From positions 344,425,765 to 344,489,764 of the forward strand of contig NC_133620.1 in assembly GCF_048593235.1 (NCBI RefSeq): a DNA stretch of 64,000 nt, given 5' to 3'. Both the position numbers and the translations under genes were made by a program. This document shows positions 8,501-56,033 of the stretch, piece after piece (the stretch's first letter is position 1; the number at the start of each line of letters is the position of its first letter). The DNA is from Sminthopsis crassicaudata (taxonomy: Eukaryota). The notes under the pieces were generated by a model, which saw only the letters and a list, made by a program, of their open reading frames with translations, did no database searches and had not been told where the DNA came from.

Positions 8501-11500
8501 CTCATGATTGGCTGGGTTCCCCACAATGGATCCAGTAGGCAAAAATAGTCATGGTTCCTGCCAGGCCCCCAGGTTCCTCAGACATTCACCTATGTCTGTA
8601 GTGGAACTGAGGCCCCACCTTCCCTACAGGTGGAGATTTTTTACCAGAACCACAGCATCTTGCATCTGCTTCAAGGAGAGCAGGTTGGGAGAAGAGGGAA
8701 CCTGGATGGTGTAGGAGGGATTGGGATTGGTGGGAGAAGGTGATCCATGGATGAGAGGGGCTATTATGTTGTCAATGTCATGGGCAAGGCCACTGGCAGG
8801 AATGTGCCCAGATGTTGAGGATTATCTGGATTGCTCTTAGTTGAAAAAAAGGAGATTGAAACCCCTAGAATGTAATATGCGTCTCCTTACAGGTTGCATC
8901 ATACTTTGGGCACACAGTGGCTGTGACTGACATCAACAGGGATGGGTGAGGAGGGGTGAAATCCCTGTGGGGGTTATTATACCTAATACTTAAATACCTC
9001 AAAATGAGACCCTCTACAAGGGTTGACATCCTATCCTCTTCCACTTCGTGGTGACAATGCACACCATTTAACAGGAGAGATGACCTGCTGGTAGGTGCCC
9101 CACTCTTCATGGAGCAGAGAGCCAACCGAAAGCTGGCAGAAGTGGGAAGGGTATATGTCTACCTGCAGCTTCGAACCCCACATTCCCTGGGCAACCCCAA
9201 GCATCTGACTGGCACTGAGTTATATGGGCACTTTGGCTCAGCTATTGCTCCTCTTGGTGATCTGGACCAGGATGGATACAATGGTGAGGTCAAAGGCAGA
9301 AGGAAGAAAAAAGAGAAGGAGGAGGAAGAGGAAGAGGAAAAGGAAGAAGAGGAGAAGGAGGAGGAGGAAAAGGAGGAGAAAGAGGAGGAAAAGAAAGAGA
9401 AGGAAGAAGAGAAGAGTAGACTTGGGTTTTGAGTAAACTGGATGAAGACGTATAATGGCTGTTCTTTCCTTTCTCAGATATAGCAGTAGGTGCCCCATTT
9501 GGAGGCCCCAATGGACAGGGCCGAGTGTTTATATTCCAGGGACAGGATGAGGGTCTGAGCCCACGACCATCGCAGGTTCTTGATAGCCCTTTCCACCAAG
9601 GTTCTGGCTTTGGCTTTGCCCTGAGAGGGGCCACTGACATTGATGCTAATGGATACCCAGGTGCCTTCCTTGTTCCTATTTAGTTTGCCATTCTAATCTA
9701 TTGTTGCTATTCTTGGGACAAACCCAAATTATGTAAGAAAGTGCTTCAGATGCTGCTTCTCATTACAGGGAACATTACAGTTAGGAAATCTTTCTATCAG
9801 AGTGCCCACTCCTAAATCTATTCTTTCATGGTCTCCAGATCTCTTCCTTTCCCCTTCTTTCATCTAAATTGAATCCTATATTTGGATCCCTAATTATTCA
9901 GTTTTCTTTTTTTATTAAAGCTTTTTATTTTCAAAACATATGCATAGTTATTTTTCAACATTCACTCTTGTAAAACCTTGCATTATAAAAATTTTGCCTT
10001 CCTTCCTCCCACTCCCTCCCCTGGACAGCAAGCAGTCCAATATGTGTTAAACATGTGCAATTCTTCTATACAAGATTTCTGCACTTATCATGCTGCATGA
10101 GAAGAATCAGATAAAAAAGGGGGGAAATGAGAGAGAAAATGAAATGCAAGCAAACAGCAACTAAAAGAGTGAAAATGCTATGTTATGATCCACACTCAAT
10201 TCCCATGGTCCTCTCCAGGTGCAGATGGCTCTCTTCATTAGCCCAAATTTCCATGGGGGAGGAGGACAAGAGAAAACAAGGGGGAATCTGTAGCTTCTAA
10301 GCTAATAACTAGGGAAACACATGGTTTGACATGCAGTGTTTTTATTTCTGACCCTACCTCCTATGCCCACAGACCTGCTGGTGGGAGCATTTGGAGCCAA
10401 CCGAGTGGCCGTATACAGGTGAGCATTGGCATGGAACAGTTCCCATAAGGTATCTCAGCGGCTCTTTGAGAAGTATGTCCTTGCAAGGATCATATTACAG
10501 TACGGGTAGAAATTCATGTGAACGAGATGGTGATGCAATGAAAATGGCAAACTGATCTATAGTATCTTTATTGGAAAAAAAAAAACCAAATGAGATCAAG
10601 AAGAGTTGGATATGACTGACAGACAGCTAAATAAGCAGCAGAGTTGTGAGTGATGCATCTTTCCTAGGGCCCAGCCTGTGGTGTGGGCCACTGTTCGATT
10701 ACTGGTGCCAGAAGTACTGAACCCAACTGTGAAGAATTGTACACTTTTCAACCCAAAGACCACAGTTGCAGTCAGCTGGTGAGGAGGAGAGAGGGCAGAT
10801 GTGGGCTTTTTGAGAGTAACTGAGTGAAGTTCTTGCCTGAGGACCTCAACACTTAAAAGGCTCCTTTTTCCTGCCAGTTTCAAAATCCAGATGTGTATGA
10901 GCATCACTGGACACAGCATCCCGGAGAAGCTTCGTGAGTAACTCTACCCAGGTTTAAGGAACACAGGTCTGGCTATGGGCTTGCCTGCACTGGCATTATT
11001 AGTTCATCTCTCCCCTCCCTTTTCTTCTGTGCTCAGGTATAAATGCTGAGCTGCAGCTGGACCGGATGAAACCACGACAGGGCCGGCGGGTGCTTTTGCT
11101 GGGTTCTCGGCAATCAGGCACCACTCTAGACTTAGAACTAAGCAGTGGAAATGTTCCTTTCTGTCATGATACTGAGGCTTTCTTGCGGGTAAAGTTGGGG
11201 CAAATCTAGAGTTGACAATGCTAAAATTTAAAAAGCACCAAGATAAACATTTTCATTAGAAAATTAAAATAATAGTCTTTGGAAGAATTGCACATGTTTA
11301 ACCTATATCAGATTGCTTACTATCTTAGGGAAAGGGGAGGAGGGAAAGAGGGAGAAAAATTTAGAGCACAAAGTTTTGCAAAAGTGAATGTTGAAAACTG
11401 TCTTTGCATATATTTGCAAAAATGAGATGCCATTTTTTAAAATTAATTTTAATTGACTATAAAAAAGAAAGAAAATATAGGATACTGTTCTATAATGACA

Positions 11501-17500: not shown

Positions 17501-20376
17501 ATGGAGATGTTGTGGTTGGTTCAAGAGAGTGGGATTGAAAACAGCTAGGCCCCAAGGGATGGGAGAAGGTGGGGACTAGGGGCCCTGTCCTTGACTCAGA
17601 GGGCTATGGGGGATATGTTCACCCATATGTAGATTCAAGGCGAACTGCCATCTTGGGAACTACTAGACCACTGCCCCATCAGGAGGGATGTTTCTGAAAT
17701 GGAAGTTGGGGGGGGGTGTCCTCCCAGGTGGAGACCAAGCTGCTTCAGGTACGCCTGGAAGAAACAGAGATTCCCACCTGGTGGGTGGTCGTGGGTGTGA
17801 TAGGTGGACTACTTTTGCTGATCTTGCTCATCCTTGTAATGTGGAAGGTAAGAATATAGGGGAAGCTGGGGCCTAGAAGAGGAGGGGCAAGGATGGCCCG
17901 AATGTCTGGCCTCTGTGGCAGTAAATAGTTACCTAGTTCTGTGGTGTAATGAGATCTGAGAAAGCCCTCCTCCCCAAAAGACTTCCCACATCCTGGGGAT
18001 GCCACATCCCAGGGTCATTCCTTTGGAATAAGTGTTGTTCCAATCCTCTCTTAAGTCACAAGTGTGGGGGATTTAGATGGGAGGGAGAAGGGGACAGAGT
18101 TGTGTCAAGTTATCCATTCCTTTGCTTGAATGAATGAGTATAATGGGGGCAGGGATTGACTTTGCTTTTCTTTGCATTCCACTTTTATTCACCTTTGTTA
18201 TTGTTGATTAATTGACTTATGGAGGCCATCCCAGAAAGTGTGTACATTGTTTCTCTGGAATCTTATGTTATTGTTGTTCAGTCCTCTCTGACTCTTCATG
18301 ACCCCATGGAGATTTTCTTGGCAAAGATAGAAAAGTTATTTGCCATTTCCTTCTCCAGCTCATTTTACAGATGGAGAAACTGAGGCAAACAGGGTTAAGA
18401 GCCACACAGCTAGTGAATGTCTGTGTCCAGGTTTGAGCTCAGAAAGAGGCCCTGCACTCTGGGTCAGAAGGTGGAGTTAACTTCTTGTTCAAGAAGCAGA
18501 AAGTAGTTCACTGAATCATCAATAGGATTTAAGATAGCACCTTATGAAGGGCTTCATAGCTATCCAGAGACTTTCATATTTCATCCTAGAGATTGGAGGA
18601 AGTCAATAAATAAATAAACTAGAGTTTATTGAGTAATGGTGGGGAAGATCATTTTGACAGCTGAGCAGAAAATGGACAAGAATAGGGAGCTATGGCAAGG
18701 AGTGGCCCTGCTATGAGATGATGAGTGCCTGCACCAGGATGGGAGGCAATATCAGTCGGCAGGAGGAAGGGGACCACAGTTAAGAGACATTTTGAAGGCA
18801 AAATCAACAGTCTTTGGCAACTGATTGCATAGAACAAGTGAGAGTGAACAGTTGGGATGGAAGCCTAGTTAGTGAGCCTGGGTGACTAGAAAGATGGTGG
18901 TCCTTTTGACAGCAAAAGGGAGAGTTTGGGGAGAACGATAGTAAGATCAGTTCTGAATAAGTTGAGTTTAAGGTGTCTGCTGCAACATCCAGTTTGCGAG
19001 ATATGAGCAGTTGGAGATATGAGACTGGAGATCAGGGTTGAGTAAGATAAATAGATTTGAGAATCATCAGTACAGAGATGATAATTGAATCTGTGGGAAA
19101 TCATGAAGACACCAAATAAATACTGTAGATGGAGAAGAGGCAGAGATTAGAAGGGAGAGCATGGAGGCAGCCAAGGAAAATAAAGTTGTTGTCCATTCAT
19201 TTTTCAATTATTTTCAACTCTTCATGACCCCATTTGAGGGAAGGGAGATAGGATTATCTAATGATGCCCCAGACAGGATGCTGTAGAATACCCATTGTAA
19301 TTTAAGTATGACCTGGATGAAGAGTACCAGGAAAGAATGGTGTCACCAAAAATATAAATATAATCTCCTTGAGCATAGAGACTATTTTCATATATTCTCT
19401 GTATCTCCAACATTGCTTAGCACAGAATAAACACTTAATAAATACTTGTTGATTGTTTGATTGAAAATAATGCAAAGGGGGAAAGAGATAAGTGTGCAAA
19501 GGTGATTTTGACTTATTTCCCAGTTTTGTGGGGGGTATGGTAGGGCAGGGGCAACCAGGTGGCACAATGGTGTGAGTGCCAGGCTTGGAGTCAGAAATAC
19601 TCATCTTCCTAAGTTTAAATCTAGACTTAGACACTTAAGTCATTGTGTGACCCTGGACAAGTCACTTAATCCTGTTTGTCTCAGTTTCCTCATCTGTAAA
19701 ATGAACTGGAGAAGGAAATGGCAAACCACTCCAGGATCTTTGTCAAGTTGGACACAACAGAACAAATAGTAGAGTATGGGAGAGTGGGAAGAATGGTGGA
19801 AATAAAAAGGTATCAAGGATACAAATTCTACTGTTTTCTGCTCCCTCGGTTGTTTAATCCTATTTTTAAAATTTTGGAATCATTGCTTGAAAGTAGGATG
19901 TCGATATTAACTGCATTAATTAACGTATCCCTCTGAGAGTTCCCAGTTCTATGGAAAAGACAAAACCAAGGGCCTACCCAAAATCTAAATCCTCCTGTCT
20001 TTGTTCCACCCTCTTTAAGAGGCAACAGGATCAGACACATAGATGTGTGTTTGAATCTCAGCTCTGCTGAGACTTTGGGTGGATTACCTCCCTTTGCTGA
20101 GCCTCTAATCAATAAGCCAATAATTGTACTCAATGACCCATCAAGTTTCATCCATCTCTAAATCTGTACCCTATAGACACAAGTTCTTGACTTGAATCTG
20201 AACTGGCTCCTCTCTGAATCTCTTTTTCCTCCTCTGTAAAATGTTGGATATTAGAATAACTAGTCCCTTAATTTGAATATTTGATAATTCTATTCTTCCC
20301 TCCTTTCTCTCTCTCCTAGGTTGGCTTCTTCAAAAGGAATCGCCCACCTCTAGAGGAAGAGGAAGAAGAGGAATAA
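5363..20376 (+). CDS. ITGA2B: Integrin alpha-IIb (platelet GPIIb/CD41), 30 coding exons, 1051 aa
   Basis: Signal peptide then LNLD, FG-GAP repeats with DxDxDG-type loops, thigh/calf domains, RERR furin site, TM helix, GFFKR tail; exons sum to 3156 nt in frame; 23 of 30 exon lengths equal recalled human values. Confidence 0.98.
6242..6363 (+). CDS. ITGA2B: ITGA2B exon 2 (122 nt)
   Basis: IGIVVGAPR...[11 protein letters not shown]...LKFDL; cag/gtgagt. Confidence 0.95.
6516..6613 (+). CDS. ITGA2B: ITGA2B exon 3 (98 nt)
   Basis: [22 protein letters not shown]; cag/gtgggc. Confidence 0.93.
6904..7066 (+). CDS. ITGA2B: ITGA2B exon 4 (163 nt)
   Basis: [30 protein letters not shown]...; cag/gtgagt. 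Confidence 0.95.
7236..7285 (+). CDS. ITGA2B: ITGA2B exon 5 (50 nt)
   Basis: [16 protein letters not shown]; cag/gtgaat. Confidence 0.93.
7481..7526 (+). CDS. ITGA2B: ITGA2B exon 6 (46 nt)
   Basis: [15 protein letters not shown]; cag/gtatca. Confidence 0.94.
7773..7901 (+). CDS. ITGA2B: ITGA2B exon 7 (129 nt)
   Basis: [14 protein letters not shown]...[13 protein letters not shown]; cag/gtaggg. Confidence 0.92.
8084..8131 (+). CDS. ITGA2B: ITGA2B exon 8 (48 nt)
   Basis: [15 protein letters not shown]; cag/gtaagt. Confidence 0.94.
8264..8307 (+). CDS. ITGA2B: ITGA2B exon 9 (44 nt)
   Basis: [14 protein letters not shown]; cag/gtgagt. Confidence 0.94.
8630..8683 (+). CDS. ITGA2B: ITGA2B exon 10 (54 nt)
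   Basis: [18 protein letters not shown]; cag/gttggg. Confidence 0.92.
8893..8945 (+). CDS. ITGA2B: ITGA2B exon 11 (53 nt)
   Basis: [17 protein letters not shown]; cag/gtgagg. Confidence 0.94.
9075..9283 (+). CDS. ITGA2B: ITGA2B exon 12 (209 nt)
   Basis: [27 protein letters not shown]...GDLDQDGYN; cag/gtgagg. Confidence 0.95.
9298..9417 (+). repeat. Pure-purine (GAA/GAG)-type low-complexity tract in ITGA2B intron 12
   Basis: 120 consecutive A/G bases. Confidence 0.95.
9478..9660 (+). CDS. ITGA2B: ITGA2B exon 13 (183 nt)
   Basis: [17 protein letters not shown]...[10 protein letters not shown]; cag/gtgcct. Confidence 0.95.
9908..10240 (-). mobile_element. L1 3'-end fragment
   Basis: Same 3' end type follows an L1 ORF2 remnant at 57450-57780; poly-T at the left. 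Confidence 0.65.
10373..10418 (+). CDS. ITGA2B: ITGA2B exon 14 (46 nt)
   Basis: [14 protein letters not shown]; cag/gtgagc. Confidence 0.94.
10668..10778 (+). CDS. ITGA2B: ITGA2B exon 15 (111 nt)
   Basis: [24 protein letters not shown]...; tag/gtgagg. Confidence 0.93.
10878..10933 (+). CDS. ITGA2B: ITGA2B exon 16 (56 nt)
   Basis: [18 protein letters not shown]; cag/gtgagt. Confidence 0.94.
11037..11188 (+). CDS. ITGA2B: ITGA2B exon 17 (152 nt)
   Basis: [23 protein letters not shown]...EAFLR; cag/gtaaag. Confidence 0.95.
11285..11470 (+). mobile_element. L1 3'-end fragment
   Basis: cctatatcagattgctt...aaaatttagagcacaaag...gttgaaaactgtctttgcat...A-rich end. Confidence 0.65.
11792..11917 (+). 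CDS. ITGA2B: ITGA2B exon 18 (126 nt)
   Basis: [20 protein letters not shown]...GDTHVQEQ; cag/gtaagg. Confidence 0.95.
12075..12142 (+). CDS. ITGA2B: ITGA2B exon 19 (68 nt)
   Basis: [22 protein letters not shown]; tag/gtgagt. Confidence 0.95.
12546..12693 (+). CDS. ITGA2B: ITGA2B exon 20 (148 nt)
   Basis: [16 protein letters not shown]...[11 protein letters not shown]...; tag/gtgagg. Confidence 0.95.
12833..12925 (+). CDS. ITGA2B: ITGA2B exon 21 (93 nt)
   Basis: [31 protein letters not shown]; cag/gtaaag. Confidence 0.95.
13046..13125 (+). CDS. ITGA2B: ITGA2B exon 22 (80 nt)
   Basis: [26 protein letters not shown]; cag/gtaata. Confidence 0.94.
13150..13575 (+). repeat. Diverged tandem duplication (two units of about 210-220 bp) containing an L1-type 3' end
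   Basis: Units at 13150-13367 and 13371-13575 share atattct...agaatt(t/g)ggaa...ataattgg(g/a)atggaaaataaaatat...ctttcatcctccc...cagattggaacat. Confidence 0.75.
14093..14173 (+). CDS. ITGA2B: ITGA2B exon 23 (81 nt)
   Basis: [26 protein letters not shown]; cag/gtgagt. Confidence 0.94.
14255..14480 (+). repeat. Purine-rich GGAAT/GGGA low-complexity tract, intron 23
   Basis: Recurrent ggaatgg/gggagg units. Confidence 0.75.
14534..14663 (+). CDS. ITGA2B: ITGA2B exon 24 (130 nt, 30 nt longer than human)
   Basis: [15 protein letters not shown]...SKVEHAFE; cag/gtatgg; phase fits the neighbours. Confidence 0.9.
14849..15001 (+). CDS. ITGA2B: ITGA2B exon 25 (153 nt)
   Basis: [14 protein letters not shown]...DLLYVLDVQ...PPNPFN; aag/gtaaga. 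Confidence 0.93.
15710..15841 (+). CDS. ITGA2B: ITGA2B exon 26 (132 nt, heavy/light chain cleavage site)
   Basis: LKVGQPTP...[12 protein letters not shown]...LQEPTLL; cag/gtgagc. Confidence 0.93.
16278..16418 (+). mobile_element. Young WSINE1-type SINE with G13 tail and 11-bp TSD
   Basis: ggggcagctaggtggcgtagtggatagagc (box A)...gagtttgaatc (box B)...gggcaagtcacttaacccc; flanks aggcattttga 16267-16277 and aggtattttga 16419-16429. Confidence 0.85.
16620..16830 (+). mobile_element. MIR-family SINE
   Basis: tgtgaccctg...cctcagtgcttatctgtaaaatgggga core. Confidence 0.55.
16987..17100 (+). CDS. ITGA2B: ITGA2B exon 27 (114 nt)
   Basis: [25 protein letters not shown]...GLLK; tag/gtacct gives the in-frame length. 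Confidence 0.88.
17413..17514 (+). CDS. ITGA2B: ITGA2B exon 28 (102 nt)
   Basis: [21 protein letters not shown]...; cag/gttggt. Confidence 0.93.
17728..17847 (+). CDS. ITGA2B: ITGA2B exon 29 (120 nt, transmembrane helix)
   Basis: [40 protein letters not shown]; cag/gtaaga. Confidence 0.94.
18265..18450 (-). mobile_element. MAR1-type SINE
   Basis: ttcttggcaaagata...tttgccatttccttctccagctcattttacagatggagaaactgaggc. Confidence 0.65.
18640..19150 (-). mobile_element. L2 remnant
   Basis: Reverse-frame remnants such as [12 protein letters not shown] resemble the L2 RT YADD region; ends approximate. Confidence 0.6.
19555..19775 (+). mobile_element. MAR1-type SINE
   Basis: Boxes A/B, CORE and ggagaaggaaatggcaaaccactccag tail. 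Confidence 0.7.
20320..20376 (+). CDS. ITGA2B: ITGA2B exon 30 coding part
   Basis: [18 protein letters not shown]-stop after a tag acceptor. Confidence 0.96.
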   Translation, partial: VGFFKRNRPPLEEEEEEE

Positions 20377-24532: not shown

Positions 24533-24709
24533 NNNNNNNNNNNNNNNNNNNNNNNNNNNNNNNNNNNNNNNNNNNNNNNNNNNNNNNNNNNNNNNNNNNN
24601 NNNNNNNNNNNNNNNNNNNNNNNNNNNNNNNNNNNNNNNNNNNNNNNNNNNNNNNNNNNNNNNNNNNNNNNNNNNNNNNNNNNNNNNNNNNNNNNNNNNN
24701 NNNNNNNNN
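24533..24709. other. Assembly gap (177 N)
   Basis: N run. Confidence 1.
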
Positions 24710-25840: not shown

Positions 25841-26948
25841 CTTTTATTGAATGTAATTTTTATTGCACTGTGGTCCAGTTCATTGTTGTTGTTTTTCCTG
25901 TGAAGCATTTGGGGTTAAATGATTTGCTCAGGGTCACATAGTTAGTAAATGTTAAATATTGGAGGCAGGATTTGAACTGACTCTAGGGCTGATGCTCTAT
26001 TCACTGTGCCATCTAGCTGCCCTGAGAAGCAAGGAAGGAAAGATAGAAGGAAAGGAAGGAGGATGGAGTAAAGGAATGAAAGAAGAAAACAAGGAAACAT
26101 TTAACCATCTGTCCCATTTTTGCATTGTCTCATTTGCTTCTCACAACAGCCCTGAGAGGTAAATGCTATCATTATCTCTATTTTACAGTTGAAGAAACTG
26201 AGGCAGAAAAGAGAGGTTCATCAACCTGCTCAGGATCATACAGCTGGTTACATGTCTGAGCCATGATCTGAAATGAGGCCAGGACTGGGTTTTTCTGACT
26301 CCAGACATCCAGGAATCCAGGATGATTCCATCCTTAGGCCACTTATTCAACCACTCAGACCTGTATTTCCTTATCTATAAAATCAGGAAAAGAATACATC
26401 AGAGGGTTGTATTTAGGAAAACACTTTACAAACTTTAAAGTGACTTATAATGGGAATTCTTTTGTTTTAAATTGTTCTCAACTTAATGAGCACCCTTCTC
26501 CTAAAAGAAAGTTTATATATAAAATAGGACAGAAAAAAAGATTCTACAAGAAATCACAAGTCTTTATTATATACATGGCTTGCTTTTTAAAAAAAAGTAA
26601 ACAATAAAAATGGCACCATAGATAGAATATTGGGCCTGGGGTTAGGGAGACCCTATTTCAAATTCAGCCTCAGAAACTTACTAGAAGTGTGACTTTGAGT
26701 ATTTAGCAGACATTTAATCATTTCTGACTCAGTTTCCTTTTCTGTAAAATGAGGTCAGTAATAGCACCTATCTCCCAGAATCAAAAGAGATAATATCTAT
26801 AAAGTACTTTGCAGACTTTAAAGCACTATATAAATGCTAGCTATTATTATGTGCAACTTGAGCTTTAAAATATGTATATCAAATTCAAATGTTATTTTCA
26901 AAGCTGTCCCATTTCCCTTTTTTCTTTCAGACCTTTTCTTTCTTCTCT

Positions 26949-26950
<2 letters not shown>

Positions 26951-27007
<57 letters not shown>
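26951..27007. repeat. (TA)n microsatellite
   Basis: About 28 TA units. Confidence 0.95.
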
Positions 27008-27010
<3 letters not shown>

Positions 27011-27985
27011 ATACATCAAGGTTTCTTTTGTCTTTTTGTCTTTTTGGGGGGGAAGCAGGAGGAGGTGCTATCCTATTCTCTAGTCTTCCTCTTCTTCTCA
27101 TCCCATTGAAAAAGAAAAAAATACAACCCTTATAACAAATATACATAGTCAAACAAAATGTGTTTTCACATTGACTATGTCCAAAAATGTATGTTTTATT
27201 CTGCATATTAAATCCATCTCTTGTCAGGAAGTAGTAGTTTGCTTCATCAATGGTCCTCTGAAATTGTGGTTGGTATTTCATTGATCAGAATTCTTAAGTG
27301 CTTCAAAATTGTTTTTCATTGCAATGTTGTTATTATTGTTCAATTATGTCTAACTCTTTGTAACCTCACTTGGGGTTTTCTTGGCAAAGACATTGAAGTG
27401 GTTTGCCATTTCCTTCTCCAGATCATTTTACAGATGAGGAAACAGGGTTAAGTGGCTTGTTCGGGGTGAGGTAGAGCTAGTAATTAGCCTGAGTTCCCTC
27501 AGAATTTGGACCACCACTGGTCCTCAGATTTGAATTCAGATTTTCTGATCCCAGATCTGACATTCTATTTCCTGTGCCCCATTTTATTTATAACACTTGT
27601 TATTATGTTGCATAATTTTATGTTGCTCTGTATATTTCACTCTGTCCGGTTATAAATCTTCACACAGGTTTCTCTGAAATTGTCCCTTTCATCATTTCTT
27701 CTGGTATAATAATATACCATTACATTCTTTTATCCTAATTTGCTCAGCACTTCTCCAGTGGTTGGGTATCTTCTTTGTTTTCCAATCATTTCCTATAACA
27801 AAAAAGAGCTACTATAAATTTTGTACAAATGGTGGTATCGCTGGGTCAGAGGATATCTACAATTCAGTGACTATGGGGGCACAGACAATTCCAAGTTACT
27901 TTCCAGAATGACTAAACCAATTCATGGTTTTACCAACATTCTGCCATGTGCGCTCATCAGCAGTAGGGGTAAATCATGGAAGAGA

Positions 27986-28057
27986 GCCTGTGCTCTGGGG
28001 CCGGCAGCGGCAGGGGCAGCGGGCTAGCTGCCGGGGCTACCAGGATGCCGCCGCGGA
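27986..28057 (+). repeat. 72-bp copy of the FAM171A2 5'UTR and start codon
   Basis: Identical to 29115-29153 joined to 29191-29223. Confidence 0.92.
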
Positions 28058-28699
28058 AGAAGTGTGCATGGTCCACTGTGTCTGGAATCAGAGGACCAGA
28101 ACTTGAATATTTGCTCATTAACTAAGCAGCCACTTGATGATACAATGGACAAGGTGCTGGATTTGGAATTAAAAAGAAATGAGTACAAATCCCAACTCAG
28201 ACATTCACTAGCTGTGTGACCTCTCTACTTCTATTTTCCTTCTCTGTAAAATTGGAATAATAATGATACTCATCTCACAGGGCTGTTGGGAATATGAACT
28301 TTAAAGTAATATATAAATGCTATGTGACTCTGAACAAATGTGATTACTGTGCTAGTTATTGTCACTTAGCTTCCCTGGATCTCAGGGGGAAAAAAAAGAG
28401 AAAGTGAGATAGATAGGGGATAGACAGAAGGGGAGGAGGTTAGTTGGACTAGATGGTCTGGGGGTAGGTGAAAGAAAGAGTCCTGCCTTCAAATATAAGA
28501 AAGTCACAGTCTTATTCTGCTTTTCAGGATGAGAATGAGGCAATAGGATGAGAACTAATGGAAGGAACCTTAAAATGAGGCAGATTTTGGCATAAAGTGG
28601 CTCAGAATCCAATCTAGGGAAGGAAGGAAGGATGAATGGATGGGGGGATGGATGAGTGGATGGGTGGGTGGAAGGGCAGATGGGGGGACTGCCCCCTAA

Positions 28700-28820
28700 G
28701 TAGTGAACTGTCTCCCTACCACAGGAAGTTCCCTCAGAAGTTGGACCCACCACTGGTCAGGGACCTTGTAGAGTATAAATGCAAGACTGAACTTGACCTC
28801 AGGGTTCCCTTCCAACTAGG
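28700..28820 (+). mobile_element. Diverged L3/CR1-type 3' end upstream of FAM171A2
   Basis: tagtgaactgtctcc...ccactggtcagggaccttgtagag...gacctcagggttcccttccaact. Confidence 0.5.
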
Positions 28821-29210
28821 AGGCCGGAGGTTGTTATCGGGGGCTGGGATATTGTCAGAAGGAGGATGAGTGTGCTAGGTGATGGGACCCGATGGGGTGG
28901 GGGCGTAAGGAGGAGAGGAGAAGAGAGGGGAGGGGGCGGCATTGCCCGGCGCGGCCTGCAGGGGGGGCCGGCGGGCGGGCTGAGACAATCGCGGGGAGCC
29001 GGCGGAGCGGGGCTGCGCGGGGCGGGGGCTGCGGGCTGTCTGCCGGAGGAGGAGGAGGAGGAAGAGGAGGAGGAGGGAGGGGCGGGCGGTGGCCGGGCCT
29101 GTGCCTGTGCCTGTGCCTGTGCTCTGGGGCCGGCAGCGGCAGGGGCAGCGGGCAGCGGGCAGCGGGCAGCGGGCGGACGGGATGGGCCGCTAGCTGCCGG
29201 GGCTACCAGG

Positions 29211-39651
<10,441 letters not shown>

Positions 39652-54689: not shown

Positions 54690-56033
54690 GAAATTAGATA
54701 TGGATCCACACTTAACACCATATACCAAGATAAGATCAAAATGGGTCCATGATTTAGGCATAAAGAGGGAGATAATAAATAGATTAGAGGAACAGAGGAT
54801 AATCTACCTCTCAGACTTGTGGAGGAGGAAGGAATTTATGACCAGAGGAGAACTAGAGATCATTATTGATCACAAAATAGAAGATTTTGATTACATCAAA
54901 CTAAAAAGTTTCTGTACAAATAATACTAATGCAAACAAGATTAGAAGGGAAGTAACAAATTGGGAAAATATTTTTAAAAACAAAGGTTCTGACAAAGGTC
55001 TCATTTCCAAAATATATAGAGAACTGACCCTAATTTATAAGAAACTGAACTATTCTCCAATTGATAAATGGTCAAAGGATATGAACAGACAATTCTCAGA
55101 GGAAGAAATTGAAACTATATCCACTCACATGAAAGAGTGTTCCAAATCACTACTGATCAGAGAAATGCAAATTAAGACCACTCTGAGATACCACTACACA
55201 CCTGTCAGATTGGCTAAGATGACAGGAACAAATAATGATGAATGTTGGAGGGGATGTGGGGAAACTGGGACACTAATACATTGCTGGTGGAGTTGCGAAA
55301 AAATCCAGCCATTCTGGAGAGCAATCTGGAATTATGCCCAAAAAGTTATCAAACTGTGCATACCCTTTGACCCAGCAGCGCTACTACTGGGCTTATATCC
55401 CAAAGAAATACTAAAGAGCGGAAAGAGACATATATGTGCCAAAATGTTTGTGGCAGCTCTTTTCGTGGTGGCTAGAAACTGGAAGATGAATGGATGTCCA
55501 TCAGTTGGAGAATGGTTGGGTAAATTGTGGTATATGAAGGTTATGGAATATTATTGCTCTGTAAGAAATGACCAGCAGGAGGAATACAGAGAGGCCTGGA
55601 GAGACTTAAACCAACTGATGCTGAGTGAAATGAGCAGAACCAGAAGATCACTGTACACTTCAACAACAATACTGTATGGGGATGTATTCTGTTGGAAGTG
55701 GAAATCTTCAACATAAAGAAGATCCAACTCACTTCCAGTTGATCAATGATGGACAGAGGTAGCTACACCCAGAGAAGAAACACTGGGAAGTGAATGTAAA
55801 TTGTTAGCACTAATATTTGTCTGCCCAGGTTGCATGTACCTTCGGATTCTAATGTTTATTGTGCAACAAGAAAATGATATTTACACACATGTATTGTACC
55901 TAGACTATATTGTAACACATGTAAAATGTATGGGATTGCCTGTCATCGGGGGGAGGGAATAGAGGGAGGGGGGATAGTTTGGAAAAATGAATACAAGGGA
56001 TAATATTATAAAAAAAAAAAAAAAAAACAAAAA
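54690..56033 (+). mobile_element. Young 5'-truncated L1 with 3'UTR, poly(A) and 18-bp TSD
   Basis: TSD aaacaatcactgcagcca at 54672-54689 and 56034-56051; open ORF2 C-terminal frame 54700-55716 with a CX3CX7HX4C knuckle (CWRGCGETGTLIHCWWSC). Confidence 0.95.

Follow-up and report, generated by a model that had tools for sequence, protein, structure and literature searches.

The FAM171A2 locus and its upstream spacer

The 64-kb stretch of dunnart (Sminthopsis crassicaudata) DNA analysed here, referred to below as the window, contains the gene FAM171A2. A long open reading frame (ORF) at 37900–39651 is the last exon of this gene: it is 100% identical to S. crassicaudata FAM171A2 (the six mismatches in the alignment are all intron-derived residues at the exon edge), and its relatives carry PF10577 and PF20771. 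Exon 1, on the plus strand, contains the start codon at 29211–29213 and ends at 29319, and Granulin lies downstream of FAM171A2, tail to tail with it. The FAM171A2 ATG corresponds to position 10001 of the dunnart locus used for comparison (L001), which is part of chromosome record CM109184.1 (478 Mb) in GCA_048593235.1; this is the window's own assembly and hence is not independent of it. L001 is 100% identical to window positions 19211–49651, as compared outside the window's two N runs and outside 27418–27455, which is the conserved core of a MIR-like SINE. The public record contains no N at the positions of those runs (24533–24709 and 34287–34558), indicating that they are masks and not assembly gaps, and a 30-kb stretch of the chromosome record around the locus is gap-free.

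Orthologous loci were compared from Antechinus flavipes (L002), a record labelled Sarcophilus harrisii (L003; hereafter devil), and koala (L004). The FAM171A2 5' UTR includes a mini upstream ORF (uORF) at 29182–29193 (ATG GGC CGC TAG) that is kept in dunnart, Antechinus, devil, and koala, as well as microsatellites (a GGCAGCG heptamer, (GGA)n, and (GCCTGT)n; window positions 29040–29180, approximately 9800–10000 in L002, L003, and L004) whose copy number differs between species, with koala having fewer GCCTGT units. In the devil gene model (UniRef A0A7N4PIV6), the FAM171A2 coding sequence runs ~110 codons further upstream, in frame, through the 5' UTR, and this extension is probably an annotation artefact of a G+C-rich open frame.

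The spacer upstream of FAM171A2, which follows ITGA2B, is intergenic in the gene list of the record. Its portion at 27596–27985 (plus strand) is an old dispersed repeat that ends in ...ATCATGGAAGAGAG, is 63–70% similar to three further copies within the window, and is orthologous in Antechinus, devil, and koala. This repeat, formally unclassified and with no Pfam match, resembles an L1 3' end. The portion at 28062–28300 (plus strand) consists of unclassified sequence followed, from ~28126, by a MIR-like SINE recognized by its similarity to other sequence within the window. The ratio of observed to expected CpG dinucleotides is 0.21 in the left portion and 0.0 in the right, which lacks CpG altogether. 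Elsewhere in the window, a 338-aa open frame (54700–55716, plus strand) runs antisense to an L1-like 3' fragment and likewise has no Pfam match.

A 72-nt copy of the FAM171A2 5' UTR and start codon

Between these two flanks lies a 72-nt stretch (27986–28057), hereafter patch B, that is identical at 72 of 72 positions to two separate pieces of FAM171A2, 29115–29153 and 29191–29223. The identity between copy and donor ends abruptly at both edges of the patch, with 0 nt of extension, bearing out the preliminary description, which had reported an exact 72-bp copy in two donor pieces. Segment 1 of the patch (27986–28024, plus strand; 39 nt) runs from the last GCCTGT unit through the first 5' UTR heptamer units; its donor (29115–29153, plus strand), which is kept in dasyurids and koala, lies in the CpG-island 5' UTR and starts at the last unit of a (GCCTGT)4 repeat. 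Segment 2 (28025–28057, plus strand; 33 nt) reproduces 29191–29223 (plus strand), in which the last part of the 5' UTR is followed by the initial 13 coding bases of FAM171A2 (exon 1), and thus comprises the TAG of the mini-uORF, which has been retained without its ATG, the remaining 5' UTR, an ATG at 28045–28047 that is the counterpart of the gene's own at 29211–29213, and 10 more coding bases. The donor sequence skipped between the two segments (29154–29190, plus strand; 37 nt) contains three GGCAGCG-type heptamer units and then GGACGGGATGGGCCGC, with 16 unique bases that include the upstream ATG at 29182–29184. The two segments meet at a 2-nt GC microhomology, such that the breakpoint can be shifted by 2 nt, in agreement with the earlier claim of a 37-bp internal deletion with GC microhomology that removed three heptamers and the upstream ATG.

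Patch B has a G+C content of 78% and contains 7 CpGs, all of them intact as first described. Its donor is intact in the same assembly and lies in cis, in the same orientation, at a distance of 1129–1166 bp. The patch lies 1.15 kb before the ATG of the gene. The copied ATG opens a real ORF, as had been noted, that extends from 28045 to 28125 within a 49-aa ORF (27976–28125). Judged by the empty sites described below, the acceptor could have contributed the first of the 72 bases, a G, so that 71–72 bases would have been copied.

We found no further copy of patch B on either strand of the 64-kb window, and comparison of the entire window with itself revealed no other short duplicate of similarly high identity, indicating that the patch is neither a chance match nor a common feature of this DNA. 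We also considered a tandem or segmental duplication and rejected it, since a sensitive comparison of 26800–28250 with 28251–29700 revealed only two short patches of similarity (patch B and patch A, described below) and no homology between their flanks.

The insertion occurred on the dunnart lineage

The loci of all three outgroups align through the acceptor site, and in each of them the alignment with dunnart breaks exactly at patch B. Antechinus and devil read ...ATCATGGAAGAGAG-ACT-GTGTGCATGGTCC..., and koala, which is more diverged, is likewise uninterrupted, such that the sequences corresponding to the left and right flanks directly adjoin one another in all three. The empty site of the outgroups can be written ...GGAAGAGAG-ACT-GTGTGCATGG..., in place of which dunnart reads ...GGAAGAGAG + CCTGTGCTC...GCCGCGGA + AGAA + GTGTGCATGG. 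An empty orthologous site in related species, which the preliminary description had proposed to look for, is therefore present in Antechinus, the devil record, and koala. Moreover, patch B carries a T in GCTCTGGGG that, among the donors, is found only in dunnart (Antechinus has a gap at this position, and devil and koala have G). Three empty sites together with a dunnart-specific donor base within the patch indicate that the insertion occurred on the dunnart lineage, and because koala is an outgroup to all dasyurids, these data settle the polarity of the change.

Patch B differs from its donor at 0 of 72 nt and has kept all 7 of its CpGs between CpG-poor flanks, in a region where dunnart and the outgroups are ~93% identical. 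Assuming that CpG sites are ten times as mutable as others and that the donor evolves half as fast, we roughly estimate that a complete lack of differences is likely only for an event within about the final third of the dunnart branch, counted from its separation from the antechinus/devil clade. If CpG sites are not weighted in this way, the bound loosens to approximately four fifths of that branch.

An assembly or polishing error would be a trivial explanation for these observations, for example if a 37-bp deletion allele of the 5' UTR, together with four additional bases, had been placed at the wrong spot. The only dunnart sequence compared is from the same assembly as the window, and the 37-bp deletion that sets the patch apart from the reference donor is a difference that an alternative allele might show. 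A misplaced allele would hardly delete exactly 3 ancestral bases, add 4 bases of filler, and land on a CTGTG microhomology, however, and the patch and its donor have no flank in common. In addition to the chromosome-scale record being gap-free here, ten sequencing runs from the same species, originating from at least three studies, contain at least half of the sampled words of 27300–29700, a tally that does not resolve which words those are. We therefore regard an artefact as improbable.

Junctions of the insertion and the skipped G-quadruplex tract

The insertion resulted in a net change of +72 bp, in which 3 ancestral bases (ACT) were lost and 71–72 donor bases and 4 bases of filler were gained. 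The filler (AGAA; 28058–28061, plus strand), as delimited by the four-species alignment of the acceptor, lies between the copied DNA and the point at which ancestral GTGTGCATGG resumes, and it differs both from the continuation of the donor (GCGG) and from the ancestral acceptor (ACT). At the left junction, the ancestral acceptor ACTGTG resembles the donor hexamer unit CCTGTG, and the copy begins with the fourth and final GCCTGT unit; acceptor and donor repeat thus have 5 nt of microhomology (CTGTG), or 6 of 7 nt when the preceding G is counted. No clear microhomology is present at the right junction.

Two parses would fit the letters at these junctions. According to the first, ACT was replaced by the copy plus AGAA. 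According to the second, the acceptor bases (A>C)CTGTG were retained and followed by 66 copied bases and a 7-nt filler, AGAAGTG, that would involve a 3-nt re-use of GTG. Dunnart has a C where the outgroups have A (GAGAG-C-CTGTG), and this base needs either mismatch correction or a prior substitution in dunnart. A cluster of changes is also present ~20 nt to the left of the junction, at 27960–27975, where dunnart has gained a G and lacks CAGA relative to Antechinus and devil; these changes may have accumulated by ordinary divergence or may have arisen in the same error-prone repair.

Under either parse, the interval 27986–28061 contains no target duplication of at least 5 nt, no poly(A), and no TTTT/A site. 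The hexamer GGAAGA does occur on both sides of the insertion, at 27978–27983 and 28055–28060, as originally reported, but the pair does not represent a target-site duplication, as the empty sites show that the second occurrence is composed of the donor bases GGA and filler. These features bear on whether the 5' end of a FAM171A2 mRNA could have been retrotransposed by L1, either as a class 1 TSIP or as a fragment of a processed pseudogene. The acceptor is located within L1-like and SINE debris, and L1 reverse transcriptase can switch template to the 5' ends of other RNAs. In addition to the hallmarks missing from the junctions, however, no 3' part of the mRNA is present, and the old repeats on either side have orthologues in koala, indicating that they were not part of the event. 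An L1-driven retrocopy or chimeric retrotransposition is consequently the least credible of the explanations considered, and we judge it extremely improbable.

The jump between the two donor segments coincides with a G-quadruplex (G4)-prone tract. Several overlapping canonical G4 motifs are present in the donor at 29142–29186, and the skipped 37 nt form the core of this tract, with five of its G-runs; patch B itself has no G4 motif left. The alignments thus establish the insertion, its polarity, its source, and the anatomy of its junctions, and the empty sites, the dunnart-specific donor base, and the combination of microdeletion, filler, and microhomology substantiate the original proposal of a recent, microhomology-mediated templated insertion.

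An older copy from the same promoter

A second, shorter copy, patch A (27492–27522, plus strand), interrupts a MIR-like SINE; its 31 nt were copied from 28727–28758, in the FAM171A2 promoter ~485 nt before the ATG. It is 93.75% identical to the dunnart donor across an alignment of 32 columns, with a single mismatch and a single gap, and matches the ancestral donor at 30 of 31 positions. Patch A is present in Antechinus and devil and is absent from the orthologous SINE of koala and from the other SINE copies in the window. Since those copies and the koala orthologue lack the 30 nt in question, we rejected plain similarity between SINEs as an explanation. The presence of patch A in dunnart, Antechinus, and devil, but not koala, indicates a separate, older event on the dasyurid stem.

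Patches A and B were copied from the same promoter, in the same orientation, and are collinear with each other, at offsets of 1235 bp and 1129–1166 bp, respectively. By a rough, post hoc estimate, the chance of such a coincidence is ~1–3% if donors are evenly spread over a few kb. One possible reading is that the CpG-island promoter of FAM171A2 is a recurrent "hot donor" for break repair, i.e., that its G4- and R-loop-prone DNA, or its nascent RNA, has been copied twice, in direct orientation, into positions 1.13–1.24 kb upstream. Were this true, a fixed contact, or a single-stranded or RNA template, would be biasing the choice of template in the germline. We consider this reading rather unlikely.

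In the three-species alignment of the 30-kb locus, ~20 lineage-specific insertions of at least 15 nt are present, and patch B is the only one with a non-adjacent local template. A 171-nt insertion specific to Antechinus (L002 30157–30327) matches a second small insertion (30339–30357), ~180 nt away, over 13 nt in inverted orientation, and may represent either a small inverted-repeat element or a product of fold-back repair.

A model for formation of patch B

These data are best accounted for by a microhomology-primed templated insertion at a repaired germline break, copied from a nearby template in the dunnart lineage, a reading to which we assign a probability of roughly 0.8. We infer the break itself, the order of the steps, and the enzymes involved. 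A double-strand break or collapsed replication fork would have occurred in the germline within the repeat-derived spacer upstream of FAM171A2. One of the broken ends would then have primed a short tract of synthesis on the FAM171A2 5' UTR, 1.13 kb downstream and in the same orientation, during which the polymerase would have jumped 37 nt, at the GC microhomology, over the G4-prone heptamer repeat. The new strand would finally have paired with the other broken end via the CTGTG common to the acceptor ACTGTG and the GCCTGT repeat. With the G-rich strand as template, synthesis would have proceeded from the ATG side toward the hexamer repeat and would have stopped once the new strand could first pair with the other broken end, which would explain the position of the left boundary. 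The reaction could have been catalyzed by Pol-theta end joining or SD-MMEJ, could have involved MMBIR-type switching, or could have been a capture of a free fragment by NHEJ.

The template of this repair may alternatively have been RNA, with a FAM171A2 transcript (nascent or mature) or a short 5' cDNA used at the break as in a class 2 TSIP or by Pol theta reverse transcription, and with an RNA G-quadruplex being skipped. The copied stretch lies wholly inside the sense 5' UTR and the start of exon 1, it starts 96 nt before the ATG, a plausible length for a leader, and the G4-capable, G-rich strand is the RNA-like one. Class 2 TSIPs, which have been described as RNA-derived, also have the same junction features (PMC5110952). 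On the other hand, neither a splice junction nor poly(A) marks the copied part as RNA-derived, and its donor is in cis at 1.1 kb, as opposed to the distant loci that gave rise to described TSIPs. The source of patch A, well upstream of the donor of patch B at ~485 nt before the ATG, suggests that DNA has been copied at this locus. The devil gene model, in which coding sequence reaches at least ~320 nt before the ATG, weakly hints that 29115 need not be the start of the transcript. Given the proximity of the donor (in cis at 1.1 kb) and the source of patch A upstream of the patch B donor, we favor DNA over RNA as the template by approximately four to one, and consider use of RNA in the formation of patch B rather unlikely.

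Patch B as sequence without evident function

Since it contains a start codon and unmutated CpGs, patch B had been suggested to seed a mini-promoter or to act as a decoy start in transcripts initiated upstream. Seven intact, unmethylated-looking CpGs within 72 bp could constitute a miniature CpG island or promoter, and the ATG, in the gene's own start context, opens a 26-codon ORF. The youth of the patch alone accounts for the intact CpGs, however, and the site is intergenic in the gene list and has no annotated transcript. Conservation is absent as well, the patch being missing from 3 of 3 outgroups, and four ORFs that cover part or all of it have no exact match in the protein collection searched, which evidently does not cover non-genic animal ORFs. 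Neither exact look-up of three ORFs over the donor nor a word search with a 330-aa non-genic ORF, also over the donor, returned a match. The suggestion thus found no support, and we consider functional novelty very improbable; patch B is most likely neutral.

Patch B is a well-resolved, natural templated repair patch from a mammalian germline: the site is empty in three relatives, the donor is known, the copying skipped over a G4-prone repeat within the template, and the same promoter gave rise to an older sister event. Such cases calibrate how far from a break, and from which kinds of sequence, repair takes its templates. They also serve as a warning to annotators that an orphan 5' UTR with a start codon is not necessarily a gene fragment or a regulatory element. 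What is known of FAM171A2 itself is unchanged.

Comparison with known types of insertion

Class 2 templated sequence insertions are characterized by microdeletion, microhomology, and non-templated bases at their junctions and by the lack of a target-site duplication and poly(A) (PMC5110952). Patch B resembles them in having an intact donor, empty sites in relatives, no target-site duplication or poly(A), and the same junction features, and, because it is heritable, it must have arisen in the germline or early embryo. Described TSIPs originate from distant loci and have been argued to be RNA-derived (Onozawa and Aplan; PMC5110952), whereas the donor of patch B lies in cis at 1.13 kb and the copied part contains no splice junction that would mark an RNA.

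Pol-theta end joining and SD-MMEJ involve microhomology-primed copying of nearby sequence, repeated switches of template, and addition of filler, and have been assigned a role in natural genome evolution (PMC4490562, PMC7165422, PMC2943611). Patch B, with its microhomology, copied nearby sequence, template switch, and filler, resembles the products of these reactions in its junction signature. Typical inserts of this kind are a few to ~30 nt long and have templates within tens of bases of the break. Patch B differs in both respects, as its 72 nt were copied from 1.13 kb away.

MMBIR/FoSTeS events involve template switching at microhomology and can contain several collinear pieces, as patch B does with its two pieces and 37-nt jump. 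The MMB-TI signature, derived from yeast, consists of a template within ~100 bp of the insertion that is flanked by microhomology (PMC8421209). Microhomology is present at patch B, but its template is 1129–1166 bp away and its insert is longer, and no larger rearrangement occurred alongside it.

The loss of the G4-prone tract also invites comparison with Caenorhabditis elegans lacking dog-1/FANCJ, in which G-quadruplex-associated deletions are reportedly repaired by Pol theta. As in those deletions, a G4-forming tract was lost with minimal microhomology at the junction; unlike in those deletions, the dunnart tract was lost only from the copy, with the donor remaining intact. Considered together, these likenesses and differences are best read as placing patch B within a known mutation type, its nearest counterparts being class 2 templated sequence insertions and patches of the Pol-theta or MMBIR type.
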